A stretch of DNA of 64,000 nt from Trichoplax adhaerens (taxonomy: Eukaryota; Animalia; Placozoa), in NCBI RefSeq assembly GCF_000150275.1, contig NW_002060957.1, forward strand, positions 537,968 to 601,967. Direction: 5' to 3'. The stretch's first letter is position 1. Each line of letters begins with the position of its first letter. Of this stretch, positions 1-62,369 are shown one piece after another. The notes below the pieces were generated by a model. The model saw only the letters and a program-made list of their open reading frames with translations, did not search any database and was not told the DNA's origin. Both the position numbers and the translations under genes were made by a program.

Positions 1-3000
1 ATGGATAATAAGGTAAGATAGTTTCTGTTGCTGATTTATCAATTCCGTAAAGCCTGCAAAGCCGGCAGTGGCTATATTGTCATATTGGCCAAATTGAGGG
101 ATATGACTTAGCTCTACAAATTTGTTCAAGGTTAACGTGCCAACGCAATGACGGCGTAAAATTTGGCGTAACGGATGCTTTAAGGGCAAGTGTCGATTAC
201 CAACAACGCAGACTGGATCCATTAAGAATTGAGTTTTTAAGAGATGTTCAACAAGTTGACTGGAGACATATGTCGCTAATTGAGCTCGAGTTTTAGCAAT
301 AGACCAGTTATCGCCATCAGCAGGGGTAAAAACTGAGGACGTTGGTGTGCTATCCATCTGAATTGCAACTGGCAGTAATTGACCATTATTGACATCGGGA
401 TTAGATACGAATATAGCAATTGGCGATGAGGTATTTTGCATTGTTCTATTATCAGTGGGTACTTCGTTGATGTCAGGTCCTTGCGGAAGTGCTCGTAATT
501 CTGGAAATTGCATTACGAAGATACGACCATCTTCCAAAGCCTAATTTATTTTATGTTTACACAATTTACACAGTTATCATCGATGACAATAATTATCCAA
601 GGAAGCTCAATTATCACTACAATAACAGTAACATGATAAATTACTTTCTTACTTGATTTACAGTATTACCAAATGTTTGCGAATTCAATTTGGACTCAAT
701 AGCATTCTTCCAACCAAAATCAGGATTTAAGAAAGGTTTTAACTCAGAAACCTTAGTACCATCGAAAATAGCATCTAAGTAAGACCAAATGTTTATTTTT
801 TGAGCATTATTAAAAGGAAATATTAAGAGATATCCATGTATGAAAGATATAGTACGGTATATCTTACAAGTATTATTCGCTCCGTGTGGCTCTATCAAGT
901 ATATTGTACAGGGTATATCAAAATGGAATTATTTATTTCTGTCTTACCTCTCTGACAAACAACTTTCCAGACAGGCTTAAAGCAGCTAGTATAAAACAAG
1001 CGCAAGCCATATCGCGAAAAACGAGCTGATAAGCACTTTCGGAAGTAGCTTGGTGTGTTGTAAGTATTTTCAACGGTAGTGCCATCCAGCCACTTACCAT
1101 ATTTTGCTCCCACATAGACACGTGAGTACCATGCTTTGAAGTACTTATTAACAAGTTTAGCTTCCGTAGGATCCGACAATATTGGTAAACGGCCATGATT
1201 ACATTTGCACTTATATTGAGCAATATGCCAGTTTGTGTAATGATATGGACGAAAGGCTTTATAGCAATGTTTACCAATTAATTTCCAACCCTGTGGACAA
1301 GCTACATGTACATACAAGATTTAATATTTTGGTTGCTTAATTCAAGTTACCATTACCGGTAATTAAGATCTGATTAGCAGATCGGGTAATTTTGGAGAAC
1401 GTGTTATTATTAACAAATTACTCATAAATAATGTGATTAAAGCTACTTCAACTTACATGATTTGAAAACTCTGGATAGCTGCAAGGGATGTAATCCTGCC
1501 AAACGCTGCTCTGCAAAGACTTTATCATCCGAGAAATTATCAATGATTAGATCACTAGGCATCGTGAGTTGATTTCCTAGTGCCTAAAGTAATGAATTTA
1601 CAAAGCATGAATAGGTTTAGCTAAGTTTGCTATCAGTAAAAATTTCTTGATTGATAGTATGCTCTTAAAATAATTACATAGTATATGATTATACTAAAAT
1701 ATAGCATCCTATCAAAGTCGTTAAATCCAATTAGCTGACTTATCCATTTTTACCAATAAATTTCGTGGTGCAGCTAATTACGATCACTGCATAAACTTAT
1801 TTTAGCATGATAAATTATAACTCAGTATTATAGCAGTATACCATTGTATGTGATTATGACTAAGTCTAATAGTATCAGAACTAATACCTATGTTGTTTCT
1901 TTATCTTTGCTTGCATTCAATTCACATTATATGATGCTTATGTACTTTATATTTCTGCATTGCATTTGTACTATCCTTCACATAGGTTGCACTCTACTGT
2001 TGATTAGTACAACAGTAACTCACATTCCCAAATTACAGTTTGAGACTCAAAATTCTTTGAGTTTACCATTAATTCATTACAGCCTGTCATCAATTGATTT
2101 CAAGATTTCAATCTTAGCTGTATACTAACTTAGATGAATTTAATCAACAAAAAAATAAAATTAAAATTAAATTAATAGCCTGATCGACACTCGAGGGCTT
2201 AGCCACACCCGAGATCATAATTCGAGGACAATTTAGTATGCTGATTATTTTGACGCATGCGTCCATTAAGCGGAAGGTATATTTCTTTTCACGATATAGT
2301 TCCGCAAATTTTCCTTTCTAGATATTATTTGCCAGCCGGACTAGAGATTTCTCCGCCTTTACCACTCCCATCTATTATTTAAAACTAATATTGAATGCGA
2401 TCTGCTTTTCTTTTTTTTTTGTCACTTAATGAACAGTAAAAAGGATACGTCCGCGCATTGCAATCGATCGCTTAAAAATTGCAGAGCTATAATCACCTGG
2501 AATGATTTCAGCTAATTATGGCACAGTTGCCATGTATAAGGAATAAAGTGATAGTATGCAATGTAGAACTGTACGTCTTAATAAAGTAACTATTGATTAT
2601 AGCTCGTATGATGAAATGGCTCACCTACCCATATGAGCTATGTAAGGTCGTAGCTGATAGCCATACTAAGTATTATTGCTATTTGAGCAATCTACTTTTA
2701 AGATTAATGACTCCTATACATTATCTAGACGAGGTATAGAATTGACGGAAAGGAAAAATTGCTAAATAGTACTTAAATTAAATTCAGAAATTAAATTAAT
2801 CAAATCATTCTTAGCAAAGTGTGCCAATATTTTTTTATTACTATATCATCATTCAAATTTTCTTGGTTATTGTACAATTCAGCTAATGACGAACGTCACT
2901 GATCGTAACTAGTTGCTTAACCTATAATTTTTTTAGAAATATTTATTGAGTAGTGCTTATTTGCTGTTGCAAAGTATGGCGATGTCTTAAAAAGTCACGC

Positions 3001-6000
3001 AAAGAGTCAAAGGAGTAGGATGCAGCTGCCGTTAATATAGACAAAATTTCATTCCTCAAGGGATGTGTCCATTTCTGTGATGCTAAAGCTTATACCTATT
3101 CTAGATGTGCAAATTGGCAAAGACTGACTAAAAATACTATTAGTCATAGGTCGCTAATTGCTGTACAAATTTTTTGAGGGATCTTATTTTACATGGAGTG
3201 ACTTTGCCAGTATGAGAATGCATGGATGCTAATAGTTTTTACTCTGTTAATCTTTCATATCAACAAAAACTTCCAATTATACTTTGCTATTAGCAATGCT
3301 GATATTGATTTGTTGATACACGTAATTATTAACTAAGCATAATATGGCCTAGTGTTGGCTTAATATTTACTTTCATAAACATAAAATATCTCAAATGCTA
3401 TGATAAGGGTGGAGGAAGTAAAAGGCGGATTCGGATATTGTCGGTGAAATTCTCAATTAAATACTTTGCACCTACTTCCCGTAGTACTGAGGCTTACATT
3501 CTTTTAGAGTACCATGTACCAAATTGAGTCTATATATATAATGCATGGTAGGAAGTGCAGTACACTCAATGAAGAAACTGTTAATGTTATACTTCATATA
3601 GTCAAGATGTTTGTATCATTATAATATCTTTACAATAAATAGTAAAATATCCTTTCGCGTTAAGTTTAACATAACTTAGATAAAACATTTGCTGCAAGTG
3701 AGGACTTGCAGTTATTGAAAGAAGACAATCAATGATTTATATAATTATTAATCTCATCTGAAATTCTGAGTCAGATACGCGAGTAAGATTAAATTTTAGA
3801 ACGCTAACGTAATTATAAGCTAGTGCGTATATATATTTACGAAGAGAATTTTTATTAAGATCAAGGTTCAGTTCTATATCAAAAGCAATACAGTACATAA
3901 AGTGACTTACCAACTGCGCATCGTAAAAGAAGGAAAACAACGCCTTGTAGTCTTCAATAACGGTAAAGTCTCGAAGAGAATTATTGCCAGTGGTAAGGAA
4001 AGTGGCCGCTAAGTTAGCACTGTCCTGTAACGTGAATTGATACGAAAAAAACCATGGATTTTCCAATGGATCACTAAATGCAACACCGAATGCTGTGCCT
4101 GGATCGGCATCCCATAGTGGTGGAATTAACACAGTTGGATCCCGCAGAGGATTATTAAAATCTGGTGTTTGACGTAATGCATATATAGTTTGACTTTGGG
4201 CTAGTTCAGTTTGACGATCCGCTAAACATGCTGCACTAACGAATTGTGGTATATCGACTGGACAAGTATGGTTACTACGAGGCAATCCAACCAATTTATG
4301 ATCCTTTTTAGATTCGATAAGTAAATCAGCTGTTTATAATTGTAGAGATAAAGAGCTATTATTAGATAAAAACACAGCAAATTGGTCTTTGATACGATAT
4401 TAACCAATTCGGAGATTGTTAACATAATATATTGTTTAAGTACCGTGATGAGTATACAACGAATACGAATATCAATATATGATTAGCGCATCTCTATATA
4501 TTCAACAGGTCTAGATAGGATAGAGCCATTTCTTCACTTTTTAATAGCATGATTGATTGTATAATCAGGGTCATTGCATAGTTACTGTAGTCACTTAAAA
4601 TGAAACAATCAATTGGTTTTGCTATAGTCTGATACTATCTTAAATTTTATATTTATAAGGGTGAAACGTCAACATTGCATAGAGTTTACTTATCTTATTT
4701 TAAGCAAGCAAACGATATTTTAACGATACTGCCGAGTTAGCTCGACGATGGATAAAATGTAATAGACTTTGCAAATTTGATGTAATGATGTTTAGATAAT
4801 TATCATACGCGCAAAGGAGAAGCCTTCTATTTTACTTCAGTCAAATTAAACGCTTAAGAAATATAGCATAAAGCATATACATATGAATTTATATAAATGA
4901 ATTTATATATAATGGCCTGTAAAATCAATAATTATTAATATAAACACTGAAAAGGACAATAAAAATTAATTAAAGTAAACGCTGAAGTTTCTAACTGACC
5001 TATTGGTCTATATTCTTGATCAGAAGAAGTCACATCACTTTTATTTTACAAGGATAATTTAAGAAATGAATTAGGTAACTAGCTCCAAGATCTATACATA
5101 TAATAATTAATCTGATAATTTGATAAATGGATTATTTAGTTAGGGACCAATCGTAGCATTGAGAATGAAATCGATTGATGATAACAAATAATTTATAGTC
5201 CATAATTTATTATAAATCGTATGTAATCATTAAGAACTTCTGTATCGCGTATATCGTCTTTAATATTATTTTTACTGATTCTGTTTAGTGTTGCAATTGA
5301 GATAAATCAAGATTGTTACAAAATTATGGAGGAGTCATGATCAACGTGAATATTTTAAGTAATGCTATGATTAAACTACAAATTATAGACAATAATCACT
5401 GCAATTAATTATTCCATTGCCGAAGCCTTGTAAGGATATTTATAAATCAAGTACTATGATTGTATAGTTGGCCAATATGGCATTCTACTTACTATTATCT
5501 TGGCTTTTGAAGAATTGGCTGTTAAAGAAGCAATCTGAATAAATTCCAACGCATAAACATGTTTCTGGTAAGATGCAGAATTCACCTTTACCACAACTCT
5601 GACGGCAAACAGCTAAATAGATTGAAATTTTAGTTTTCTTAAATTTCTTGAATTAATACACATAAGGCGTTAAAATTTAGCGGTTTGGGAATTCTAAACT
5701 GCTAGCGATGACAAAGACTACTACATGCGTAGTGATAATGGAATGCTTTAAATTATTGACTTTTATAATCAAGATTAAATCAACTATGAGTTAATATTAT
5801 CCAAATTTTTATGAATTGTTATAAATGGCTTTTCTTTATACGATTAATCAGGTATAGAATGGACTGTAATGTACTGTACATTAAATGCTCTATCATAAAG
5901 CAATAAGGTCCGCACCAGCTGTGTTCATGGCATAATAATATAAAGGTTCAGTTTTCGATTAATTTAAATTTTCTACTAGATTAATTGCTAGTATGGTAAC

Positions 6001-7175
6001 TGTTACAGAGTAAGTTAACTTTTCAAATAAGTTCACGTTTAATCCATGCTTCATATTCTATATAAGTCAAATAAATTATAGACAGCGCCATACAACTCCT
6101 TCACTATAGTTTTCTTGCACCGTTATCGTAACGTCTCTTATATTACTTTTTAATTTTACAACAACATTTTGCAACGAATCCCATAAATATTACATTGCAA
6201 CTTAATACTACAATGTCTGGCAATGCATATATAATACACTAATTTACAGCAAATCGATCAACTACAACTATCCTGTATCATATAGTCGGTACCGGATAAA
6301 GTGCAATTATGAGCTTGTGGCAATTTAAAGATCATAACGGTCACTTACAGAGTAAGATCATTACATGAGGTTAGCTAATTTATGAATAGTATCATGTCTT
6401 TGAAAAATTAACATATCGCATGCATTGCTATTCAAAGTGCATGAAATATCACTGCCTTGACATAATGACAAATATATTCTGTTTCTAAAACTACTTACGT
6501 GTAAAACAAGGATCTTCGCCATAAATTATTCCATTAGGCCTTGACCAACCTTCACAACATTGAGGATCTTTTTGATTTTTTATGCTTAAGTTCTTAATGA
6601 TGCTATTTAGTCTTTGACCATCGCTGATTTAATTTTAAATGAGTAATTAAATAATCATAGGATACATAGGATCTGGCATAGTATCAAACTTAAAACACAG
6701 AAAAGATTTTTACCTCTCCACTTCGCAAACATTGTTATTGAGAAAGCCAGCGATGATACTTGCAATAAAAGGAACATAAATTATTACTTATTCCATATAT
6801 CTAATCAAACTGTCTATTTTTCTAAGGATATTTAAAAACTGATATAGAATTAGCAACAAGTTGTTCGTACTTCATAAAATGCCCACAATTAAATAAATCA
6901 GCTGATCACAATGATGTAACTAAATTTAACAACGGGATCTATGTAGAGATATAGATAGTGTGTTTCGTGTCTCTTTAGTTTTTAAGACGTGAAATGCAGT
7001 TTTTACTCGCTTTGGCTTAAATCTCCAATTATATCACAATAGAAATAGTATGAAACACTTTTTTTGCACCCTTCTTTTTGCTGTATAGCTTCCCCTACCT
7101 TGTTAAACGCTCGTATTGTGATGAGGGTAGTGGCAAGATGGCAAAGATGGCTATAAGAGCCAATACAGACTTCAT
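1..7175 (-). CDS. Secreted lipoxygenase-family protein, paralogue A (signal peptide-EMI-EGF-LOX with inserted C-type lectin domain); 3' end runs off the window
   Basis: Hand-spliced exons with GT-AG sites and consistent phases: 7175-7099 (MKSVLALIAIFAILPLPSSQYERLT, signal peptide), 6758-6714 (..NNNVCEVE), 6623-6499 (..QCCEGWSRPNG..DPCFT), 5612-5493 (PVCRQSCGKGEFCILPETCLCVGIYSDC, EGF-like), 4329-3911 (CPVDIPQ..RQTELAQSQTIY), 1583-1457 (FSDDKVFAEQRLAGLHP, LOX motif), 1301-948 (CTLD), 774-653, 540-<1 (ALEDGRIF..LLPVAIQM..DNWSIAK..QLVEHLLKTQFLMDP..RHLPLKHP). Confidence 0.9.
948..1301 (-). other. C-type lectin-like domain exon (354 nt, phase 1-1) inside LOX paralogue A
   Basis: CPQGWKLIGKHCYK..NWHIAQYKCKCNHGRLPILSDPTEAKLV..VYVGAKYGKWLDGT..KCL..TSC..VVCQ follows the long-form CTLD pattern; AG acceptor at 1302-1303 and GT donor at 946-947. 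Confidence 0.9.
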
Positions 7176-10100
7176 TTTGAGACAACGAAATGAATCTGAT
7201 CGTTCACTGTGCAACCTAATCAATTCAACGTGAGAATTATTAAGAAGTATCAAGTTGTTTATCAGTTTTTGACAGCAATGATTAATCAGCCTTAATTATT
7301 TGTTAATAGTGCAATAGATTATGATGACAATGTGATTGACTTAAAACAATTAATAAACAATTATTCATCATTGTGCTCGACATCGCTTCAATGAACACTA
7401 TGTTAATATTGATCTAACTTTTCTACAATGCCATGCATTTTTCGATCTTATTTGATTCGCTGAAATTATTTTGCTTGACTTTTTGTAACCAAAAGACCAC
7501 TTCGAAGAAGATTTAGATGGTAAATCTTATAAGCATTAATAATATCAGGTTTAAATAATACTTTCTTAATAAATACGTAGCCTACAGGCAATACAGATGG
7601 CTAGACTGCTAGAATTTAAGATAGATAATTGAATCCATAATTTTTATATGCCTTACTTCAAGATTTCGTTTAATTATCATCACAATAAAATTATATAATA
7701 ACATTTACTATTATCAAAGATACATTTTCGGCTAGAGAATAAATAATGGAAAAGACTAGATTTAAGAAATTATTATTTATCAAAGTATGATTTACAGCCA
7801 TTAAAAATTATAAGCGCTAAAACATAACTACGTAAGATATGGTAATGCACATGGAGCATAAAAATTATAAAGAATTTTTGCCCCTATTCATAAAAATGAA
7901 TATTTAAATTAAGGGATCATTAAAGGATCCTTATATTGATAATTCATTATAATTAATTGGATTATTAGTTTTGTTTCACTAATTAATGAATGCTTTGCTA
8001 AATCACAATTGTTACGGTAATAATGAAAAAACCGTTCGGGGGCAACTAAATGCGGCAGTTAATATTTAAAATAAGATGCATCGTCTATAAACATATTTTC
8101 GAAATTTGAAGGTTAGGATCCATTTATTTTCCTAAACTTAAAACAATAGAAACTACGACATTAAGTCACTAGGAATGATTCTCTTGGAGCAAGCCAATGT
8201 GCTATCGTTTCCAAAATACTTCTGATAGTAAAAATACCTTAGTACGACTTTTTACAAACGATTCTAGAGGTATAAATTGGGGTATACTTTGGAGTGGGTA
8301 TAGTCTGGGCTGTTACACAGGTTCTCATTTTTTAGCATCCTTTTATAATTGGTGATATTATAGTCATATCATGGTTTTATATTTTAGCTAAATATTTACA
8401 GCGGTTAATTGAAGCTATAAAAGTATAGCTAAAGTAAAATTGTTGCAAGAATACAGATAATTTTATTAATTTAATCTAGCTTTCATTTTATGATCTATTC
8501 TTAGTGTATGGTACTGTTTTGCATAAACGTTGTATAATGGAATAGTATCATAATAATTAGTATCACTACTACGTAGTTACTAATAAAGGAAACATTAGAG
8601 TCGTCTAATGTTTTAGAGGAGAGCGAAATCATTGTACAGTAGATTATAGTTGACTTCTATTACCCCAAAATACTACCATATTAGTTGCGCTGCCAACAAT
8701 TTCTAATAAATATTCAAACTTAACAAGATTTATTCATTTGCTAGATTTTTCGTTCTAATCAATAATTTTCAGAGCTCGATCAATTTAGCTAGCGCTAGAA
8801 CCAGTTATGTAGATAAATAAACGTGATTGGTGCTTTTAAGACTCTTGAGATAATATTTTGTAATAGATATCCTAAGATGATCTTATTCTATAATAGCCTA
8901 GTAGTGACTAAGTCATGGTGTTATGATATATGAGCAGTATTAACTAAATATCATTCTGATACCATTACCTACTATATTTGCTTTTAAATATTAGTGGGCT
9001 AATAATTATTTTATCAGGTAATTCATTCTGATAGAAAGACATTAAAGAGATTTCGTATAATGCTATTTATACAATGTAAAATTATAGATTATTGCATGTA
9101 ACGATAGAAATAGATCTTAAAACGCAAAGCTTAATGGCATGAAGTTGGTTGATAATTTATTCCCAAATCTAATAAACTTTCATTCAATCCGTCATACCTT
9201 TACTTTAATCACACTCTATTTTCTAGTTTTAATCACTCTGAATCATTTTTTAAAGCCTCCTTTATTTCTTTATGCTTATGCTGAAATATATCTGAAGATA
9301 TTGTTACTGCTGAAATACTTTTTCTGTCCACGTAAAACGAAAGGCAGTAATTTTAATTAAACAATATCACAGATATCAATCTAATCTACGAGACGCTATA
9401 AAAATATGAAGCTGTGAAGCTTACTCAAAATATGCTTTGACATCGAAGTAATATAACGCTAATTCTATATCTATCAATACATCTATCGATCATCACAAAA
9501 CTTGACTAAACTACATTGCTTTTCCTAAAAGTTCCAATAATAGCTTATTTTTGAGTTTGTAGCGCCAAAATTTTCATCATTTATTTCTAAGAGAAAAAAT
9601 TAAAAAGAAGTATCAATGCGTTGTATACAATAAAATATTTGCTTTTACCATGTTGTACTAGGACTTTCGTTAGCTAATTTAAAGGTTAAAGGTTAATATT
9701 TCATAATGCTTGTAGTATTTTCATAATGATTTCAGATACTGATATGGAAAGACTGGTAAATTTCTTTTTTACATACCTTTCCCTATAATACGTATGATTA
9801 GCTCATTTGGCGATGATAGTAAATAAAGCATAAAATAAAAGAATTATTGTATTTTATTCTTATATAGCTCTGATTCGATAAATGATATCATAGTGAATAC
9901 AGATAAATAATGAGCCTAGGATGGGTTTTGTAATTTTTAATTGAAGTATTGAGGCCAAAAAGTCAATATATCTAATGTTGACTAAGAGATATATGGCTAC
10001 TAATTGTTTCTACGAGACAATGAAAATATTTCTTAAGTGCAAAGCTACATAAAATTGTCTGCGTATTCTGCCTTTAGTATTATATATTCAATATGAATGT

Positions 10101-11040
10101 GCTATGGGAATTGACCTTGGCCTCTAAACGATAAGCTCAAGGACAATATTATAAAATTGTGAACGACAAACTGATATGCTATGTACGGTACCGAGATCTC
10201 GGAACAGTAGGAGTTAATTAGGTGCTTGCTTTGCTAGCCCCCATCAGGCAATGCTCGCTTGTTTTGTTCTTAATTCTATGACGGGATATTGACTAGATTG
10301 CTAGAAGAATTCTTTAATTTAATAGTCACTGAAAGTAGTTTGTTTACATAAAATTCAATAAATATTCTTGAGAGATTAAATGTTATACCAGGAGATCCTA
10401 CGTTAATGATTAATTAATTAATTAATTAATTATGAAAAAAATAAAGTTGTTGCTAAGTGTCACTAACCAGCTTCGTGACAAAGATAACGTAAAACAAATC
10501 TCTAAATTACTCTAGTCTCCAGGATTCAGTATCCCTAAACTACCTCACAAGAATTTAGACGCCTTTGCTTCTACGTTAAAACAACTATATAAGTCTTCTT
10601 TTATTCAACTATCTGCCGAGCTTAACCCTTCGGCAGCAGCTATCATGTAGGAGTCATAACGGTTCATGAAATTTAGCTCATATTGGATAGCTAAATTAAT
10701 ACAGAAATTATTCATAATTTTGGACATGTACCGAACGATTCTAGATAATTAGACTACAGTATGTCCACACGCAGAATTATTTATAGTATCACCTATAATT
10801 GAATATCTTCAGGATATTCATCATAAGCGTTACAAGACATAACGCTATAATCAATTACTATTGGTTACCTTATAAGAACTTTTACTACAATGCAGCATAA
10901 TTTACTGTAACAAATAATAACTACCGCAGTTCTTACTGTAAGTCATCATTAGTTATCTCCATGTATGAATGTTAAACACTAAATTTAGTCATATACTTTT
11001 CACAGTGGCTCGTACCGTAACACTAAGATATTACGTTTAA

Positions 11041-11340
11041 ACCATGTGTCACAATTTTACTTCTGCGACAAGGTAACGTACAGTAAAAGTCTATAAGTAG
11101 CTACTGACTTAAACGCCCTTCTACCTAACTTTAAACACACACAGCAAAATACTGTAAAGATAAAACTTTTATTAGCAAAGACACATCTACAACTTTTTAC
11201 TACCCCACTCAACTCAAATGTTCCCGTTTATATAGGAAAAGTCTAATTTGTAAACAACAGTATTATTATTATACCTTACTAGGAGAAACATCTCGAAATG
11301 AGATGTTCGTTACATAGCTTTTCTATCAGTAAACATTTTG
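11041..11340. repeat. Dispersed repeat (~290 bp), copy 1; inverted copy at ~57950-58238
   Basis: Shared blocks such as TAAAGATAAAACTTTTATTAGCA, CTCAACTCAAATGTTCCCGTTTATATAGGA, TATTATTATTATACCTTACTAGGAGA and TAGCTTTTCTATCAGTAAA are found as reverse complements in the Apaf-1-like intron. Confidence 0.85.
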
Positions 11341-14300
11341 TATTTCTTACTCTTACTTAATCTTAATCTAAGCACGTAGGTTGTCTAATTCAACTATCAT
11401 CAACTAGAACTTGAATCATCTTACTGCTATTTATCACACAATAACAATCAATATCAAATATGTAATGAACTATCACAAACAACATCCACGTTAAGGCATT
11501 ACTTATCTTACCTAGAACTACAAATATGGATATTCTCCGTACTAGCTACTACTGTACTTATTAAACTATCCCAATGACAAGGCAACACCGTAACACCATG
11601 TAAATATTAGTGTTAACAAGGCATCTCGAGTAGTTGTATCAATTTGCAAGATACTAATATCATTTCTAGATGAATGCCCAATATCTTTTTACATCTTAAT
11701 AGTTGATGGATATCATAAAATTGAACGAAAGCCTTTCACATTATTACCAGTGCCATAGATAAATTCCAATTCTCTATTAATTACTATAAATTCACTTCTA
11801 GACTTAATTATTTTCAAGCGCAGGCGACTTATGAGTTTCTGACATAAAATTCTAAACTTTTAAAAGATTAATAGTTTGAGAATATCGACAGTACGAAAAG
11901 TATTTCTTGATATTTCGGAAATAAGCTAATAGAACACCTGTTGCTAAGTAGTACAGTTATTCTTTTAAAATAATTGCTAATAAATTGCTTGATGTAATCT
12001 CTTATTTCAAACGTATATGTTACGGTCAGTGTATAAGCTATTATTGCCATGGAACGATTCATAACTCGACAAACTCCGATATAATTTGCTACTAGGTAGC
12101 AAATAAATGGGCTGCATGAATAACCCGTTCGTAATACGTACTTGTTACGGTTCATCATTACCGTAAATAAAAAAAGAAATATTTATTCATATTTTTTCTA
12201 AAGTAGAGTTGCGATATGTTAAGTCGTTAATGGATTTCCATTAATGAATGTGTGATAAAGATTGCCACACTTGATTAATGAGTTATTAAGTAACATGTCT
12301 AGTTGATTTGTTAACTGGAGTAAGAGTGGTAAACACTCAATATTAATTTACATATATCTATTCTATACTGACTGTCATAAATATATGTTATACAAAATCA
12401 AGTATATTGTAAATAGAATTATGCTGATAGAAAATGGCATAGGTATATAAGAGCGTGCCTTTAATCATAGAAGGAGTTCTCTTATTACATTGCCTAGTAA
12501 TATATGTTATCGTTCGAATAAAGAGGATTTATGAAGTTATCCGGATATACACACTGCTGAATAAGGTCTTATACTAAGCTGGTCGAGTTAGTGAAGCTTA
12601 TTAGCAACGGTATATTACGGTAGAGCGGTTACGTTAGGAATAAAATTAGTTACTTGTACCACAAACGACGTTACGACAGAACTATATATTGATAGTTTTT
12701 CTATTACTCGTAAGTAAACAATTGAGCAGCCTAAAATTTGTCATGTAACAACTGTAAATTGCTAATAATAAGACACAACCAAGATTGGGAGAGAAAAGAG
12801 TTCGAAATAGCCTGTTATTAATTCCGCGTCCGTTAGCTCAAGGAATTTAGCTTTTTTAATGAATAACTTAACATGGCAATGGAAGAGGCGAAAAGAATAT
12901 ATGCTTCTGTTTATTCATTTGCATATATAGCTATTTTTACCTATGTTCTTGTATTTATACAGCTCGTCAGGATTTCTATTTAGTATCTACTAGGATAAAT
13001 ACATAGAATTTGCTCTTTAACTTCTTAAGTTCACTTTACTATTCGTGGATTCGACTGCCACTTGATTGAAAGTTGTAAAGAATTTTGTTGATGTATTTAC
13101 TGGGGCCTGATTGTGGCACAAAATATACCATTGTTTCGATGCTTAATAAGCAGCAGTCCTATTATTTCACTGTAGATCAATGTCTATATTCGACCAGAGA
13201 ATTAATGATAATTTACTTATATAATTAATCAAAATGGGGCAAAAATTTTTTCATGCACCGACACTGATGTCATGCAATAGAGCCTACAAATATGATGTAC
13301 TGGTATGACAGTATTCATTTTAGGAACTAGTTAGAGGTGATTGCATCCGCAAACAACTTCAGGCACTGAAATTCCACGGCCCATATACAGTATTGAATAG
13401 TTACTGGCCCTTAAAGGATGATACAGTAAATGATAACTTATAATTACGGCTTAAAAGATATGCACCACTTGCAGGAGGTATTAACTGAAATATCAGCTTA
13501 CGCCCCTCTAGAATCATACAGGCACGTAATTTTCTCAGCATCTATCATTATCATTATTGATTTATTTATCTTGGCTAACTTTATGAATGGCTGAGTAAAG
13601 ATTTTAAGTTTCGTCCTTTTGGACAACATTACTTGAAACAGCATTTTGTAGGACTATTTCTGGTAGTCATAAAAGTACACAGAATCCTGAATATTATATG
13701 CTCTTTATATTTTATTTCATGCGAATTATCTTACTCAGTTAGGACAGGTATATATTTGTTTATGATATAGGTAAGGTTAGAGTCTGAATTTTTATTTAGG
13801 TACGTAGTATTCTCCATTATACTGCGGTATATAATGATTATTTTGCTAAATGAAATATCTAAAATTGACGGTAACATTCTCGTATAAGCGAGTAGCAAAC
13901 AAGTAAATTACAAGGATAAAGTTTTACTAAATATAATTTAATAAAACTAATGTCCTCAAGCTGCTATAAGAAAGAAATGGATACCTTTATTAGTATTAGA
14001 ATATATGGCATTAAAACTAGTCTATTTAATTGTCTCTCACTTTTAAACTAACGACAATTACCAGGTTTAGGACACTAAAGCAGATTTTGTCATTCCGATT
14101 GTGACTAGGAGGAGGTAAAACTAGTAAGATCCATGCTTTGACGTTTTAAGATAAAGATATCCATGACAAATCATATGTTATCGTATGAATTAAATTTTAC
14201 CTTAGGAAAATCTAACATCTTAGCATAATAAATTATTAAATTAGGGATAACGTCAATACGATATGGTGCTAAGTAACTGTCCATATAGGCAATTAAAATA

Positions 14301-15034
14301 TATGCTTGTATTGCGATACAAGGACCACAAGTTAATAAAATTACGAATTCGATGAGAGGAAGGAAAAAATTTTACGGCGGACTAATTATACTTGAAGAAA
14401 TGATGGCATTTACCAGTTAATACAGAAAGTGAAATTTTCTACGAAATAATTGGATGCGCACTATTCATACCCAACTAAATTTTGCAGTAATAGCGAATGA
14501 ATAAAGAAAGAAACTCAATAAATATGAGCGTATCTGTTATAATATTAAGTACGGTAATTTTGCGTAATATATTAGAATTAGATCGATATGATGTTAATAA
14601 TAAATCCGTGTCTGGAGCAAAAAGGATGCCATACGGCAATTTAATAATTATTCTGTAATATCATAGTGAACTGGTAGATTACATCGCAAACGTAGAGCTA
14701 TAATGCATAATACACTATCATTCTAAATTAGATAGTCTATTTTAACCTTATATGATTTGATAATTTATGCTTAACTTAGATAGTTCCTACATTTTAATGA
14801 AGTAAATTAGCGAAGGTAGATAGTTAGTCTTATTACAAGAGTGGAAGCTTGTAGTTTTTTCTGAAATATCGCGGTCTATATTCTGTTACTTATTCATAAA
14901 GTAATAAGATGTAGCTTTAACTGATATGTGAAAATAGCAACAATGCTACTGCTGATTTTAAATATGCCCGTACTATCGATGTTACAATGTAAAATTATGT
15001 TATATTGCTGTTAGAATCCATATCTGAAATGGTC

Positions 15035-18000
15035 TTAACTACTAATGCTATTTGGTACATTTTTTGGATGAAGGTACTTATAGCTCAAATGGCCATTGGC
15101 AACATTGGCGTTATTTCTAGCCACTAAATTAGCTTGAATGGTATCAATGCGAGCCTTGAATTCGAAGACCAACTCTTCAGCATCGCTATCTGCCATGCTA
15201 GCTGCATAATCGAACAAACTATCGAAATGTAATGAAGCCAAGTTGAAGCCAACTTCTACATGAGTCTAGGATAGAAGAAATAAATATTAGAGATAAATTT
15301 GTTATTGCGAAATATTAGTACTGGAAAGCTAATGAGGTAAAGTAAATGATGACCCTATAGTACTTTAGCTGTGGTTAATTATTATTATCTTGTTCAAGAA
15401 TGTAGAGTGTTACTAATTATAATTGTAATTATCCTGAAAAATTTAGTATCAAACCTTGTACTATTGTTTACAGTTAAACTCATAAAATTTGAAATTTTGC
15501 CGATATTGTTTGTCTACTAACGTCGCAGATTCTAATGATAAATGCTTATTGGATAATTATACTTACTAAAGATTGGGTCTTGGTTGGGAATTTTATTGGG
15601 TCAAATCCTGTTACACCGTCCACGTTATAAATTTTACCAGGCATATTAGGTAGAAAAGTGCCATATTCAATGACTGGAAAATTAACTGCTGCATGTTGGC
15701 AAGAAGAAGACCAAACGAATTTATGCAATACATCGATGACTTGAGCTTTTGTAGTGAAAGATTGAGGGAAGTCGCGTAACTACATATTTAAGCGAGACGA
15801 TACCAGTTTAAGTAAGTAAGTAATGATAACGAATTATAGTTTTTTTGTAGTCTCTGAATACTATTAACATCAGTTCATATATTGCAATAAAGTTTAGCTT
15901 TAAAATACATAGCTCTAGGTGACTCAAAATGACACTGGATACAGTTATTACTCACTTTGCCTTTGCCTGAGTCTGGAGTACCTGTAGCACCTAAAGCAAT
16001 TTCGTTTGCCCAACGTTGCATTTCATGATCGGCAACTACAGTTGCATCATCTACATAATATCTGAGAAAATTAATTTGTAAAATTAGAATCGAAGGTTAT
16101 TGTATTTGTTCCTCCAGGTCAGTTGTCTATTAAACTTACAGGTTAACGTAATCTCGTATAAAATCACCAATAGCTTTATATAATTCTAGCCCATCATCTC
16201 GGTAAGGAAAGAAAGGAAGTGCTTGCTTATCCAATAATCCAGATTTCTAACTCATGATAAATATAATATATAGCGACTTAAATTAGTATATACTACAAAA
16301 CGTTGTACTCAATTAATGGTAGACTGTTCAGTGATTCGATAATACAAATTTTTATATCATTATAAACTAGATATTGCTGCTTAAGTGCCCAGAAGGTGAT
16401 GCTTTTAACCAAAGCTAGCAGAATCGTTGTCTTACTAAGCAATTACTACAAGCAGCTTCAGTTATAATTCTATTGCTTAATATAACAGTTAGGTCAATTT
16501 TTTTCGGTAGTGAACGATAAGTACTTCAATATTTTGCGTTTAATATATTGTAGCACAAAATTTATTCAACTCGTTAAAAAATAGTTAAGCTCAAACCTTT
16601 AATCGATAATTAGGGTCGTGATTATTAAATGACCAGGTATTAAATCCATTATTTATAACGTCATTTTGTCCCTTGAATCCAACAGTCAGGATTCTGTCCA
16701 CTCTACCACCGAGTGGTATTAAGCTTAATTCGCCAACTTTATTCGTAGTCAATGTTCCTCTACAATGTTGGCGAATAAGTTGGCCCACAGGATGTGTTAT
16801 TGGTATATTTCGTTTACCTGATACACATAAGGGATCGTTGACTAGATGAGTATGCAATAAATGTTCTAATAATTCAGCGGTAGTAAAAGCGGACATTTGA
16901 ACTAAAATTTTAGCAATGGTCCAGTTATCGCCATCATCTGGTGTATATACTGGCGAATTTTGAGTACTATTGATCTGAATAGCAACAGGCAAAAATTCTC
17001 CATGGTTGACGTCCGGATTTGAAACAAAGATTGCAATTGGCGACATTAAAGTCATCATAGTTCTACCATCATTTGGTATTTCTTCAAAATCGGGGCTGGT
17101 TCTTATTCCTCTAAGCTCAGGAAATTCTGATACGTATACCCTACCATCTTGCACAGCCTTAAAAGTATAAAAAACAGCAAATTATAATTATGCGCAAGCA
17201 TACAATTGAGATTTAGATAGAACTGATAGGGAAATACAGTAATCTTTATTTACTTACATCAACAAAGGTATTACTATAATAAGGCGAATTAGAAGCCAGT
17301 TTGGATCGAATTGCTTTCTTCCACTTGAATGATGGGTTTAGAACGGATTTTAAGGTTGAGATCTTAACGCCATTTAAATTAGCAGCTACAGATGATACAT
17401 AAAAATATTAATAGAATCCAATCATGCTATCAAAAATCATTGAGAAATAGCATGATACCAAAATAGCCCTTATTTTTATATCAAGTAGTCACCTTTTTGA
17501 CATAATATTTTTCTCAAAGGCCAGAAACAGAAACTGTATCTTAATTTTAAGCCAGATTGAGTAAATCCAGCTGTTAAACATCGACGGAATGCACTAGGTT
17601 GATTGCTGGCACCCACAACTGGAGTGCCATCGGGCCATGTACCGTTACCGCCGTCAACATAAACGGGGACAGAAGCAAATTTATATCGCTTATTTACTTT
17701 AGCGGCTTCCTGTGAATCCGATAGATCTGCTAGATGGCTGATATGGCATTCGCAGACATGTTTTGCAGCATTAAAATTGCTGTAAGGGTATCCACGGAAC
17801 ATTCTATAGCAATTCTCTCCAATTAACGTCCATCCTCGTGGACAAGCTAAAGAAGAACAGACATTGCTTTAAAATTGATCGTGCTCAAGGCTAACTGAAA
17901 ATAATTGAAAGGCTAATATTATTGTAGTAAGGCCCAAACTATACTTTAAATGAAAATTCTACTAACTACCAATACTTTGGTTAATGTAAAGAATGTTTTT

Positions 18001-21000
18001 GGTTATATATCAGGCAGTATACCGAATCTATACAGTCACCTAAAGAAGATCAAGAAAGCATGATACTTACGCTTGCCGATAACGCGCTTCACGGGGAATG
18101 GATTTAATCCGGCAATTTGCTGCTCTGCAAATACACGATCATCTTGCCACATATCAATAATTAAATCATTGATATTAGTTGGGACATTTCCTTGGTCCTA
18201 CGTATGTGAGAAAAGCATTACAAGAATTGATTCTCAATCGATAGAAAACATTACAATCATTGTCTATTATCAAGTGAGAATGTCGTAAAGGTTCCCCATT
18301 TTAATACTGATATTAGAGATTACTTCTATACACTTACCACATGAAACATATAGAAGAAGAAAAATAATTCTCGCCAATCTGAAATACTAGAAAATTCCCG
18401 GACAGAATTATTTCCTAGACTTAAGTAAGTCTGGACTAATTGTCCGTTGGTTCCCAATATAAAAAAGTATTGATTTAACCAAGGTGCTTCAAAGGGGTCA
18501 CTGGCTCCAACACCAAAAGCCGTTGGTGGATCGATGTCCCATAATGGAGTAAGTAATACATCTAAATCACGACCAGAGTCATTAAAATTAGGCGTAGTAC
18601 GGATTTTATAAATAACACGATTAGTAGCTAATTCTGTTTGGCGCTGGATGGTACAGTTGGGGCTAGCATTTTGCGGCAATGCTACTGGACAGGTTTGGCT
18701 AGTCGATCTTTTGCTATGTTGTTCAGCATCGCGATCGAATAAATTATTGTCAAAATTTTCTTCACTTCCAACGTCGATATCCGCTGCCCAACGTGTGAAT
18801 TGATCAAAAGGCGATCCTAAAGTTTCAATAAATTCAAGGAAAATTTTGCAGAATGAAAAGTTGATGCAATCCGTCTTGAATTATGATACTCTCTATCTGA
18901 TCTAAAAATCATGATCTCTGCATCTATATCCGTTCGTTATAGTAAATGAAATATGACTGATATCGCCGCAATACTTAAATTAACAATTACTGACTTTTGT
19001 ACCTAACGTAGTCTAAATTTAGATAAGATGAATTATGGAAGCATCATACTAGAAAATAGTAGAGATGGAATATGAATTAAGAGTGCAAGTTACTTTTTTT
19101 TCCATTCGTCGCATTATAAGTTGTTGATTGACATCCTCTATAGCCCAAGACGCATAAGCACTTATCTGGCTTATAACAAGATTCCTTATTGCCACAGGGT
19201 ACCTTGCAAGTTGCTAATTATAGAATAAATGAATCAATAAATGACTAATGAATTGAGCACATTATTTTAGAATCATTAAGCAAGTAAATTTCAAGCTATT
19301 GAGATTTTTGATCGCAAAACTGAGACTAGAAATAGTCCTACGCAAACAAAAATGGTGGAAAGGATTGAATCATGAGTGTTAAAAGTTGAGGTAGATTATA
19401 TTACAGTTACGCTTAATTAGACGAAATTACACATAAATCATCTATTTTATCTTAAATACCATAGCTTACAGGAAAAAGGAGATCGCAATCAATACGATAC
19501 AGAAATTTAACGCTGCACAAGATTGTCTATTTTAAGGCTACGCTTTTGATTGGTAATTGAATTTTAGAAGTACAAAAATTTTGCACTATTGAGACTGAAA
19601 TTCACTGCAGAGTTTAGTCATCTATTTTCTTCCGGATTATTGTACAAAGTGTGAGCACCGCATACTATTGCACTTACGAATAAAGCAAGGTGCATTTCCT
19701 TCTCGATTACCGCCGGCCCTTGTCCAGCCATCGCAGCATCGAAATTTTGTAGCCCTAGCAATATAGTCTTCCTCATCAAAGAATCGGTCGCTGATGCTAT
19801 GGTAAGCTCGCCTAAAATAAATTTTCAAAGTATGACATTTATATTACTTTCTATTATTAATTCAATGCCAATCAATATCACGAATTTCGCGTATTATTTC
19901 CCACTCCACTAAAAGTAATTATAAATACTTGGCAAACTGTAAGCTTAAATAAATCTCGATATTAGGATTGAGCTCAGCCTATATGTACTATAGAATGGAA
20001 GTTTAAACTCTGAGATATTATCGAAGGTATTCAATACTAAATCATATCTGTGTCATGATAAAGGTAAGAATAAGTTGGCCAATTTTTCACAGGATCCTAT
20101 TACAACATACGATTTGACTTTTGCTAAGTGTAATATTATAATTAGCATGTTACTCACACTGTAACGCTGTAATATTTATTTCTTCTTAGTCTAAACTGTA
20201 ATTATTGTAGTGGTTATCTACCTAAAACTGAACTTACTGCTTGAGCACATTTCAGTAAATGATCACTTTTGTTTCACTAATGATCAATACTACCACAGTT
20301 ATTACCGCATTCATTGCTACCGCTTATCGATGTCTAATCTTAATTATACCGGAAGCTGTCCAGTTTACTACTGCCATTAAAACTAGATACATCTAACTTT
20401 GCAAAATCTGCGATCCAATTTACTGATTAACCTGCCAATAGAATGTATTTTAATCATGATTGATTAAATACTAGAACAAGATATTTTACAATATCATTAG
20501 TACTATACCACTGTGCAATCAACTCTTGCGACAATTTTAGCCCCTTTTCTATACAGATAAAAGTAAATAATTTGGAATGGTGGTTTACCAGTTTGACGCC
20601 CATGCTAATAAATTTAGTTTAGCCAGCATACAATGGAATTATTTACATGGATAGTGTAATACGTTAAATTTTAGGTAATGTATGCACATATTTAGTGAAT
20701 TTTATGGCATTTACCGGTATTAATGCATGTTGTAAACTAATTACGATCGATAATAATCGATACCAGCGCGGTATAATATCCGCATATGCTAGTTATAATT
20801 AGAATTATCCATTAAATTGTTTTCAAATTTTAATAATACTAAGATTAATAACAGTAAAATTATAATTATTAACTTTTATACGAAGAAAATCAAGAAGAAC
20901 ATTAAAGCTAACATCAAAATGGTTGATAGCTTCAGTTGAAAACTTACTTGGCAGTATAAGAGCAGACATTGACATTGACGGAACCACTACTGTTAAGACA

Positions 21001-23850
21001 ATGAATAAATAGATGCTATTATTTAACATTTCCATCATCTATAAATAATAACTTTGTCTTCTATTTGTAATAGACCAATTTTAATTGATAAACTATAAAT
21101 GAAAAATTATTCTTTGCGTCACCATTGAATTATTAAAATAGGCTATTTTATGATGAAGTTGAGAAAACAGTCGCTTATAAAAGCCTAACAAATCTGATAA
21201 CAGTCACCAATTTTACAAATATACAGTATTCACAAAAAGATCGTTAGTAATTAACATTCAATATCATTATTTATTGCTAATGTGGAGCATTAGTAATCAA
21301 ATAGATAAATTCTACAGTATTGCTGTTATTTTGAACGGTGGTAATTACTTATTCCGGAAAGCAGAAATTATTTGGCCGATGTAACTAGTTATTTGCAAGT
21401 ATAAGTGGCGTTTTAGCTATTATTACTGAATAAATCCAGAATTTTCTTCTATGATGTGTAAATTAATTGGGCCAATGTAACAAGTTATTTGAAAATATTT
21501 ACTGTGATTTCACTCTTATGATAATATACTCGTAGGATCACTATTTTTCTTCCATGACAGGTAAATTAATTGGCCAATTGAACTGGTTATTATCCGCAAT
21601 CCATATTACTTTTCAAATTATCGTGTTTTCCATTTTATTTTGCTGATACGTCCTTAATTAGCGGTTTTAAAATTTCAGCTGTATCATGACGCTGCAGCAA
21701 TTAAGTGAACAATAATACACGGATTTAAGCTATGCTTTAATAATTTTAACCACTTTCTACAGTTGGCTTTAGTAGTAGTTTTAGAGTTCATTCCACGTAC
21801 TTGACGACTGATCTTGATTTGATTCATTACAATTTAATGTGTTCTAGAATAATACTTATGTATCATTTACTACAAATTGATGATAGTTATTATTTCGAAG
21901 TATTGTTTGAAATAAATTATGAATAATGATCTTGTATCATTTAAAGTAATTGGATGATAACTGTTGTTCCAAATTGTTTTTTGAACGCGTTATACAATAA
22001 TAATTATGAATTATTGAAATCATAAATGCAATGACTGCTGTTTCCAAATGTTGTTTATGCACATTAGGGAAAAATGAAGATAACGGTATAGACAATCATA
22101 ACATTCTATGCATAATCTAAATTTAGTTATAATTATTCTCGCATCGCGGTAAATGATGGAGTAAGTTAAAAATAATCTTAATAGATTAATATGAATCGAC
22201 AATATATGGAAATATTATGTTATGAATAAATAATGTTAATTTGTTTCCATGATTTATAAAGGTGTTGTGATTTCAGCTAATTATAGTATTATTGTGTTTT
22301 GAAAATGTAATATCGATATGTAGTAATCACTATGTAGTAGAGAATAATCGTTTATGCTTAATAAAGCAACTGTGGATGATAGGGGTTAAAACCATTCATT
22401 AAAGAAATTAAAGGAATTCTAGATGACAGGGTTAAAACCTTTCATTACAGAAAATTTTATTGTTATAACTTATGCTCGATGTAATTTCAATTTAAAATAA
22501 TGTACTGGTAATTCGATGATGTCTAGAAATACCTTGATGCGATGTAATAAATCCAAATCAATAGCACTGATTCAAGCTAAGGATAGTAAAAATCTCTGAA
22601 CTAATAAATTAAGTAAACTTTTCGACTATGTCTAATTTGCACAAAATAATTTGCATTAAAAGTTTTAATTGCGATCGATAGATAAAACATTTATCTTTCG
22701 ATTTCTCTTCTCTGGTCGGAGTTATTACTTTGAGCTTTTGATCATTACATAAGATCAATTAGTTCACAATTAGAATGTGATATTTATTATCATTAATTAC
22801 TCATAAGAATTGGTTTTAATCACAAATGATCTCAATTAAAAAAAATTTACTGGTCTATATTAGTCCAGTTTGACATGATTGTCATTTGCAAAAAAGTTAT
22901 CTAGTAGTGATTTAAAATCTTATTTATTGCCTTCAGACTCAAGTTGGCTTTGATCAAGTACGATACCTATCTAATCAGACTTGATATAATCTGGCTTTTT
23001 AGACATTAAATGATATTAATTGGATGCATTTTACTATCATTTCCTTATCTGGTATGAAATATCCAATTACAACTTCTACTATATTTAGTGGGCAAATAAA
23101 AAAATGGTAGTTCCGTATGCTATCCATATCAATACCTAGCTATAACTTCTACCTTTTTAGCTATCAATAAAGCTATTTATATTCGATTTATTCACTGGCC
23201 TAATAAAAAATAGGATAATTCTGTATGCTATCCTTGACAGTAGCTAAATATAAATTAGATGATTATTATATAATCGAGAGGCCAATTATACGCTGCTTTG
23301 ATTTCATTTTGAAGACTACCTCATTTCTGTTTTATTGTCTGCTTTTACCAACAAAATTATCTTTTAGCCATAATATAGTCATCTTTCAATAAAAGTTACT
23401 GTTATTTGGAACTGTGTTAACTTTAAAATTACCTTTTGTGTAAAAATTGGTTAGTTAAGAAGGTATAAAAATAGGATAGCATCTTAAATGCTATCGCTAG
23501 TTGTTATCATCGTGATAATTTCTAATCAAACTTTCATCCAGATTCGAGTTCTTTTTATTTGCTGTTATTTTCCTACTAATTTCTGCTTTCGTTATAATAT
23601 TAAGGTGCAATTTTAAAATAAACTAGACCACAATTTTGCTTTGGTGTTAACCACAGCTACATGTATTAAGTGATTAGACTAAAGACGCTTCTAAAATGGG
23701 GCTATTAACCTGGCTACAACAAATAAGAACAATCATACTAATATAACCAGATCGATCTTTCTAAGTAGACAATTTGATACTGTATAGTAGACTTTACCTT
23801 TGGGAAGCAGTGGCTAAGGCTACTAAGAGTAGAAAGTATCCAAGATTCAT
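15035..23850 (-). CDS. Secreted lipoxygenase, paralogue B (signal peptide-EMI-EGF-LOX with inserted C-type lectin domain), complete
   Basis: Exons: 23850-23798 (MNLGYFLLLVALATASQ), 20989-20948 (SGSVNVNVCSYTA), small EMI exons at ~20431-20398 and 20195-20158 (less certain), 19811-19678 (FRCCDGW..APCF), 19213-19094 (EGF-like CKVPCGNKESCYKPDKCLCVLGYRGC), 18816-18338, 18197-18071 (WQDDRVFAEQQIAGLNP), 17846-17493 (CTLD), 17385-17258, 17157-16597 (ELLEHLLHTHLVNDP), 16246-16140 (FPYRDDG), 16061-15956 (YYVDD..V..DHEMQRW), 15779-15567 (SCQHAAVNF), 15265-15035 (..YLHPKNVPNSISS-stop). Confidence 0.92.
17493..17846 (-). other. C-type lectin-like domain exon (354 nt, phase 1-1) inside LOX paralogue B
   Basis: CPRGWTLIGENCYR..NFNAAKHVCECHISHLADLSDSQE..VYVDGGNGTWPDGT..RCL..FC..ILCQ; same length, phase and insertion point as in paralogue A. 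Confidence 0.9.
21365..21595. repeat. Three degenerate direct repeats (~100-bp spacing) in intron 1 of LOX B
   Basis: An AAATTAATTGGCCAATGTAAC.AGTTATT-like core occurs at ~21365, ~21460 and ~21563. Confidence 0.55.
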
Positions 23851-62319: not shown

Positions 62320-62369
62320 NNNNNNNNNNNNNNNNNNNNNNNNNNNNNNNNNNNNNNNNNNNNNNNNNN
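62320..62369. other. Assembly gap (50 N)
   Basis: Run of N characters. Confidence 1.

Follow-up and report, generated by a model that had tools for sequence, protein, structure and literature searches.

Tandem placozoan genes predicted to encode secretory-pathway lipoxygenases with a cysteine-rich head on a PLAT-less scaffold

Animal lipoxygenases (LOXs) are regarded as cytosolic enzymes that reach membranes through their PLAT domain. In LOX chemistry the free C-terminal carboxylate serves as an iron ligand, and the C-terminal residue that provides it is usually Ile. Exported, PLAT-less LOXs that act on lipids outside the producing cell are represented by the fungal Mn-LOXs (PMC7436259) and by LoxA of Pseudomonas aeruginosa (PMC6702342), and their existence makes an extracellular LOX plausible. 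Here, we describe two LOX genes, A and B, in a 64,000-nucleotide stretch of the Trichoplax adhaerens genome (G000:C1400:537968-601967, hereafter the window, in whose numbering positions are given; assembly of 105.6 Mb in 1414 contigs). The window has a G+C content of ~30% and contains intron-containing genes, and the two LOX genes are arranged head to tail, both on the minus strand. Gene B shares with the canonical PLAT-LOXs (coral 11R-LOX 3VF1, human 5-LOX and 15-LOX-2) the PF00305 domain, the ligands His, His, His and Asn, and the C-terminal carboxylate. It differs from them in having no PLAT domain, a predicted secretory signal, disulfide-rich modules, an inserted lectin, and Ser instead of Ile at the C-terminus. 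The fungal Mn-LOXs and LoxA are single-domain proteins without EMI, EGF or lectin modules, the fungal ones using Mn, whereas A and B are animal genes, rich in introns and equipped with extracellular modules of animal type.

Genes A and B are likely to be tandem paralogues of one multi-exon gene type, which encodes a LOX of the secretory pathway formed by accretion of modules on a PLAT-less scaffold. The product of gene B would be composed, from the N- to the C-terminus, of a cleavable signal peptide, a truncated EMI-type module contributed by two exons, an EGF/NIM-like module, an acidic linker, and a PLAT-less catalytic domain with a lectin insert. The original prediction proposed secreted LOXs in which the PLAT domain is replaced by a signal peptide, EMI and EGF head resembling that of Draper and Nimrod. 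The predicted entry of the products into the secretory pathway is supported. Exons were found through stop-free stretches, single-exon Pfam searches and junction-by-junction reading; those of gene A were placed by anchored exon search, and the remainder of gene A past the left window end was read from neighbouring sequence (L004). Pfam, protein-library, fold and atlas searches were run exon by exon. The joined-exon model was used locally for a frame check, the ratio of nonsynonymous to synonymous substitution rates (dN/dS), one hidden Markov model (HMM) test, alignment to relatives, and two trees.

Gene B (23850-15035, minus strand) is complete within the window. Its model contains 13 exons, with GT-AG boundaries at 12 of the 12 introns and a coding sequence of 2655 bases that runs without an internal stop and specifies 884 residues. 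Exon 1 (23798..23850) harbors the ATG and a signal-peptide-like segment, ending in phase 2 (AG|gtaaag). It is followed by a 42-base mini-exon (exon 2, 20948..20989, phase 2 to 2) with the NVCSY start of the EMI-like module, and by exon 3 (19678..19811, phase 2 to 1) with the rest of this module (CCDGW ... APC). Exon 4 (19094..19213) encodes a six-Cys EGF/NIM-like module and is symmetric (phase 1-1). In exon 5 (18338..18816), the acidic linker with its dibasic KR|S site is joined to the CPVALPQ....C pair and the N-terminal portion of the LOX body. The LOX continues in exon 6 (18071..18197), which carries an AEQQIAGLNP motif and ends in phase 1, and is then interrupted by the C-type-lectin-like domain of exon 7 (17493..17846, phase 1-1). 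Beyond the lectin, LOX sequence is encoded by exon 8 (17258..17385), exon 9 (16597..17157; the core with both iron-binding His, HLLHTH), exon 10 (16140..16246), exon 11 (15956..16061), exon 12 (15567..15779; the iron ligands His and Asn in QHAAVN) and exon 13 (15035..15265), which provides the LOX C-terminus (...PNSISS) and the stop codon.

The head of gene A, which starts at 7175, has the same layout. Exon 1 (7099..7175) is signal-peptide-like with a phase-2 end, exon 2 (6714..6758) encodes NNNVCEVE (phase 2 to 2), exon 3 (6499..6623) encodes CCEGW ... DPC (phase 2 to 1), and exon 4 (5493..5612) carries the six-Cys EGF/NIM-like module (phase 1-1). The linker, the CPVDIPQ.....C pair and the N-terminal LOX segment are encoded by exon 5 (3911..4329).

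Several lines of evidence connect these head exons with the LOX exons. Exon 5 begins in phase 1, and no in-frame ATG precedes the Cys pair in A, B or their orthologues, so that translation of the LOX body depends on exons further upstream. The head phases are identical in A and B (2|2|1|1), and the four consecutive junctions are phase-compatible in both paralogues, which argues that the duplication copied head and body as a unit. Sequences from other sources agree with this organization. An A-type contig (L009, Logan SRR30664517, 8.8 kb) shows signal, NVC, CCxGW, EGF and LOX exons whose order and phases match those of A, and its signal exon is orthologous to A exon 1. A B-type contig (L006, ENA ERZ27263980) enters the gene within the last part of exon 3 (..EGNAPC..), and the EGF, linker, LOX, lectin and further LOX exons follow. 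A protein search with LOX exon 5 returned one orthologue from another source. Between A and L009, which are separated by a synonymous divergence (dS) of ~1.3, all head Cys are kept, and dN/dS is 0.24 for the EMI-like and EGF modules, 0.17 for the LOX part of exon 5 and 0.82 for the linker. The values indicate purifying selection on the head exons.

The same arrangement is visible in cnidarians. In the Nematostella gene (L015), the signal exon ends in phase 2 at AG|T (Ser), as it does in A and B (AG|C in L009), a phase-2 intron lies within the EMI, and a phase-1 intron separates the EMI from the LOX. The placozoan head phases thus equal the Nematostella series 2|2|1 with a 1-1 EGF exon added. 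Five introns of the body are shared between the B model and Nematostella in phase and alignment column (one of them to within a single column), including the phase-1 intron that hosts the lectin. Moreover, a coral contig of 2591 bases (L011) encodes 721 residues of signal, EMI and LOX in one open reading frame (ORF), and is read as one mRNA because this frame is uninterrupted. Phase continuity, the missing start of the LOX body, the paralogues and orthologues, the Nematostella phases and the coral mRNA together support the assignment of the head exons to the LOX genes.

Both hydrophobic signal exons of the original prediction (7175-7099 in A and 23850-23798 in B) were recovered, each with an ATG start, a hydrophobic core of 12-14 residues and a phase-2 end at a GT donor. 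In a scan of upstream ATG exons that have a phase-2 GT end and are phase-compatible with the next exon (region 24600-20990 for gene B), both rank first by hydrophobicity. Their 9-residue Kyte-Doolittle maxima are 2.79 (B) and 3.26 (A), and small residues follow the hydrophobic core. All cnidarian relatives likewise begin with signal-like segments. No second hydrophobic or transmembrane segment was found in the 884-residue B model, and its head contains an even set of 10 Cys, in addition to the conserved pair with which the catalytic domain begins. An ATG at 21038 was considered as the start of B and rejected, being out of frame with NVC/CCDGW; the NVC frame has no ATG there. The N-x-S/T sequons that had been pointed out earlier are present, but they occur at chance frequency (8 in B versus 8.0 +/- 2.6 expected from shuffles of B composition) and were therefore discarded as support for secretion.

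The first head module had been described as EMI-like from its NVC and CCxGW motifs, and both motifs are real. NVC lies in the A exon at 6758-6714 and in the B mini-exon at 20989-20948, which had not been located before, and CCxGW...C lies at 6623-6499 (A) and 19811-19678 (B). The NVCSY of B exon 2 corresponds to the NVCSY start of the Nematostella EMI, and the position of the module after the signal exon, together with the 2|2|1 intron phases, is the same as that of the Nematostella EMI exons. The placozoan modules retain NVC, CCxGW and the closing C, but they comprise only ~48 residues with four Cys, compared with ~70-75 residues and 6-7 Cys in a standard EMI, whose signature includes an N-terminal N[VW]C, a CCxG[WYF] and a closing Cys. 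The two central Cys of the anthozoan heads are absent; placozoan exon 2 codes for 14 residues, versus 54 in the Nematostella exon that holds both of these Cys.

Profile searches gave the EMI label no statistical backing. The EMI HMM (PF07546, gathering score 25 bits) had no match at E<=1 on 19640-19843 or 6494-6628, and its six-frame scan of the whole genome found nothing at the A and B loci. An HMM built from nine anthozoan EMI heads scored the three placozoan heads at 3.5-7.3 bits, within the shuffle range, and hhalign of placozoan against anthozoan heads aligned 9 columns at 26% probability, covering only CCxGW. No match was obtained with the B exon-3 profile against PDB sequences or with the exon-3 open stretch in the protein search, and the atlas language-model features of B exon 3 gave no usable match. 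The atlas features of the Nematostella head lean to an EMI plus EGF_PEAR1L cluster at 0.80, which is a lead only. Structure prediction for the coral EMI head (L011:252-515, 9-row alignment) reached a best AlphaFold2 (AF2) predicted local distance difference test (pLDDT) value of 78.8, with the other four models <55; a Foldseek search with it against the PDB returned only long beta-hairpin pore stems at E>0.4, which are meaningless. In the search for a donor gene, exons 3 and 4 matched only themselves in the whole genome. For the placozoan module, the motifs, position and exon phases make a truncated EMI-type module the best reading, which falls short of a tested EMI member.

The six-Cys EGF/NIM-like exon reported at 5612-5493 (A) and 19213-19094 (B) is confirmed, in phase 1-1 in both genes. 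It was judged by the six-Cys order, the aromatic residue after the fifth Cys and HMM support. The pattern C-x3-C-x5-C-x5-C-x-C-x5/6-C is invariant in four sequences. On B exon 4, Pfam EGF_PEAR1L scores weakly (14.4 bits versus a cut-off of 37.5), and an exon-4 profile finds only EGF domains among PDB sequences (HHIP and fibrillin-1, E 0.085-0.39). The AF2 model of the exon has a pLDDT of 77.7, and Foldseek yielded no usable match for its 39 residues.

The likeness to Draper and Nimrod that the original prediction saw in this head is partial. Members of the Nimrod superfamily are built from a signal peptide, a CCxGY motif and NIM repeats of the consensus CxPxCxxxCxNGxCxxPxxCxCxxGY (PMC4073527). 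The placozoan heads resemble those of Nimrod, Draper and MEGF10 in the signal peptide, the CCxG[WY] motif and a following cysteine repeat near the NIM consensus. Counted from the closing Cys of the previous exon, the EGF exon has the NIM Cys order, the xxPxxCxC segment and, in B, the GY. It deviates from the consensus in that two loops are one residue longer, the NG is absent, and only one repeat is present. Draper, MEGF10 and CED-1 receptors contain many EGF repeats, a transmembrane segment and a cytoplasmic tail, whereas in B a single EGF-like repeat leads into an enzyme. The CCxGW motif with the NIM-like EGF behind it recalls the Nimrod-family order of modules, the transmembrane segment and the Draper-type signalling tail are missing, and no statistical homology between the heads was shown. 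The multimerising and the phosphatidylserine- or corpse-binding roles that were also proposed originally find no specific support in a protein with one EGF-like repeat and neither of these two parts.

The LOX body is recognized by PF00305 above the gathering score (23.6) at 16594-17181 (50.9 bits), 15549-15779 (29.6 bits) and 1-540 (42.4 bits). The best solved match is coral 11R-LOX 3VF1 (E 1.5e-22 with one exon). Aligned to the ligands of solved LOXs, including 3VF1, the iron-ligand set of B is complete, with HLLHTH, QHAAVN and an intact C-terminus. Judged by these residues, B is probably an active iron dioxygenase working outside the cytosol. Its site of action could be extracellular, or it could lie in secretory-granule or digestive compartments. 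The CPVxxPQxxxxxC pair pointed out earlier is indeed conserved: A, B, the two placozoan orthologue contigs and the cnidarian relatives all have it where the LOX body opens. At the other end of the protein, the members of the signal-LOX clade (15035-15050 in the window; P0006, P0009, P0012, P0014) terminate in Ser, Thr or Val (..NSISS, ..NSVHT, ..NGIQT).

The body of gene A runs off the left window end on the minus strand and shows a different state. Its LOX exons 6 (1457..1583) and 8 (653..774) flank the C-type-lectin-like exon 7 (948..1301), and exon 9 (1..540) encodes the LOX core. In exon 9 (103-246), the HLLHTH of B is replaced by HLLKTQ, changing the second iron-binding His to Gln, and the same change is present in the orthologue (L009:5406-6020). 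The ligand set of A and of L009 is therefore incomplete. Since the change occurs in an orthologue from another species, it is old and maintained. In this assembly, moreover, exon 9 runs directly into exon 10 at its 3' end, and the reading frame is broken at ~1-30. The intact L009 shows what A lacks: the last part of exon 9, the whole intron behind it and 19 bases of exon 10, a loss that shifts the frame (window 1-30 plus 100 bases beyond the left end, in L004). Exons 11-13, downstream of the break, are open and conserved. Gene A could be in decay or could have lost catalysis; alternatively, the assembly could be wrong at the exon 9/10 junction.

The C-type-lectin exons (17493-17846 in B and 948-1301 in A) are symmetric (phase 1-1) and occupy a phase-1 intron whose counterpart in Nematostella falls in the same alignment column. 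Exactly at this site, Montipora P0012 contains a fibronectin type II (FN2) domain, which marks the position as a hot spot of module insertion. A PLAT domain is absent from both loci, as originally noted: PF01477 has no match on any exon and none at C1400:537968-562000 in a genome-wide six-frame scan. The same scan found 39 PLAT matches elsewhere. At both canonical LOX loci, C1412:1232949-1236710 and C1412:7605765-7609027 (~1.233 and 7.606 Mb), it placed a strong PLAT ~3 kb upstream on the same strand, and these loci serve as a positive control that a PLAT beside a LOX can be seen. The genome thus holds PLAT-LOX genes alongside the head-type genes. A fifth LOX-like place, C1409:4849877-4851015 (L003:614-1746), is a stop-riddled head-type relic with LOX and lectin remnants.

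A full phmmer scan identifies cnidarian LOXs beginning with signal peptides as the nearest relatives. Nematostella P0002 and its coral and anemone orthologues (Actinia, Pocillopora, Acropora, Dendronephthya) consist of signal, EMI and LOX, and Exaiptasia P0014 of signal, EGF and LOX. The anthozoan EMI scores 17.9-19.3 bits in Pfam (cut-off 25), aligned over positions 1-69 of 69. The cnidarian signal and EMI LOXs belong to the same clade as the placozoan genes and share with them the NVC...CCxGW...C head, the C-x-V-x-L-P-Q...C pair and the lack of PLAT. Their EMI is of full length (~75 residues, six Cys) and abuts the LOX directly, unlike the ~48-residue, four-Cys placozoan module, and the placozoan genes have in addition an EGF exon, a linker and a C-type lectin within the catalytic domain.

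Two quick, unrooted IQ-TREE runs on the B model and its matches, sampled from the best matches to one exon, place the placozoan and cnidarian signal-LOXs in one clade with a Shimodaira-Hasegawa-like approximate likelihood ratio (SH-aLRT) support of 97. PLAT-less LOXs of the sponge Sycon are sister to this clade (SH-aLRT 93 and 97 in the two runs), and the next to join are three LOXs from bacteria (Nitrospira, Pseudohongiellaceae and one metagenomic; 98 and 99). All PLAT-LOXs, namely vertebrate ALOX and cnidarian AOS-PLAT-LOX, with PLAT confirmed by Pfam, lie beyond a branch of 96. The absence of PLAT claimed in the original prediction stands, but its replacement by the head is doubtful, since both trees put the clade beside the PLAT-less LOXs of sponge and bacteria and apart from all PLAT-LOXs. 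As the PLAT-less state is common to the sister groups and the modules look added, there are simpler readings than an exchange of PLAT for the head. EMI, EGF, FN2 and C-type lectin modules would instead have been added to a PLAT-less scaffold at conserved phase-1 introns, by accretion rather than by swap. The relatives are filed as '5-lipoxygenase-like' or 'AOS-LOX-like' predictions with only PF00305 recorded, and lipoxygenase-centred searches of a paper library found no description of the head-type LOX architecture. On the sequences compared here, the genes appear to belong to a so far undescribed group of exported LOXs common to the placozoan, corals, sea anemones and sponges.

Three other explanations of the locus can be set against this one. 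The head and LOX exons might represent two genes, one for a small secreted protein of EMI and EGF modules and, downstream of it, one for a LOX without a head, the join between them being an artefact. A head-only product is conceivable, as a stop occurs a few codons after exon 4 when intron 4 is retained, and the join in the placozoan rests on genomic sequence. The phase-1 start of LOX exon 5 without an in-frame ATG before the Cys pair (A, B and orthologues) speaks strongly against such a separation, as do the four phase-compatible head junctions in A, B and L009, the joint duplication of head and body, the identical head phases in Nematostella, and the coral mRNA contig with a signal, EMI and LOX ORF. 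A pair of independent genes is very improbable on this evidence. A second explanation accepts one gene but makes the head a pro-region for folding or sorting; cleavage by a proprotein convertase immediately before the CPV pair would then set free a secreted LOX without its head. The relevant site is the dibasic ..SKR|S.. of B exon 5 (18700-18720), which lies where the acidic, fast-evolving linker ends and precedes the first catalytic-domain Cys by seven residues. The L006 orthologue has KRSKR|S at the same place (~1330-1360), and the site may be a target of convertase cleavage. The near-neutral evolution of the acidic linker (dN/dS 0.82) is likewise frequent in spacers and pro-peptide junctions. 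Neither A-type genes nor cnidarians share the dibasic site, however: a single Arg stands there in A and its orthologue (..PRS..), and the anthozoan relatives contain neither a linker nor a basic site between EMI and LOX. Purifying selection on the head (0.24) fits a function of its own, although it is compatible with a pro-region as well. Removal of the head as a pro-region is accordingly unlikely.

A third explanation keeps the proteins in the endomembrane lumen, such as the endoplasmic reticulum (ER), Golgi, a lysosome-like compartment or a digestive vacuole, with the head acting as a sorting or quality-control module. A signal peptide by itself shows only entry into the ER, and placozoans digest their food with granule-borne enzymes. 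Such a location has to be reconciled with the absence of a transmembrane segment and with EMI, EGF, FN2 and C-type lectin modules, which are typical of extracellular proteins. A KDEL-type retention signal is moreover impossible, because the C-terminus must stay free as an iron ligand. We consider lasting retention in the lumen quite unlikely.

Certain points weigh against the favored reading of A and B as genes for modular LOXs of the secretory pathway. The structures of genes A and B are read from genomic DNA. The signal peptides are judged by a heuristic, that is, hydrophobicity and small residues before the likely cut. Intron 1 of B (20990-23797) spans 2.8 kb, compared with ~340 bases for the matching intron of A, and the signal exon of B has no confirming orthologue contig. 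The EMI assignment is without statistical sequence support in the placozoan, the EGF support is marginal by E-value, and the fold searches are uninformative. The trees carry the restrictions of speed, rooting and sampling given above, and the targeting role of the head, considered below, is our inference only.

Two further features were recorded in the window. A 533-codon open frame at 35498-37099 (minus strand) is very rich in Gln, Ser, Pro and Asn and lies where the G+C content of the window is highest. An assembly gap is marked by 50 N at 62320-62369.

If the proposed structure is correct, the disulfide-rich head and the lectin insert may do outside the cell what PLAT does on cytosolic membranes, namely target the enzyme. 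They could tether it to matrix, cell-surface or prey glycoconjugates. More tentatively, non-bilaterians (placozoans, cnidarians and probably sponges) may have kept an ancient extracellular LOX lineage, distinct from the cytosolic PLAT-LOXs, that repeatedly captured matrix and recognition modules (EMI, EGF, FN2 and C-type lectin) at conserved phase-1 introns. This lineage possibly came from an early transfer from bacteria, given that its nearest relatives are bacterial PLAT-less LOXs. The placozoan enzyme, guided by its lectin and EGF modules, might then act outside the body, where it would peroxidise the lipids of prey, microbes or shed cells and contribute to external digestion or defence.

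One animal genome thus appears to contain canonical PLAT-LOXs together with LOXs built for export with cysteine-rich and lectin modules, and corals, sea anemones and sponges combine this scaffold with other modules. If the accretion scenario is true, the family would be a clean natural case of domain accretion onto an enzyme by phase-1 exon shuffling. If the proteins are secreted and active, the oxylipin chemistry of early-branching animals would also be extracellular, with a bearing on digestion, defence, symbiosis and matrix biology.

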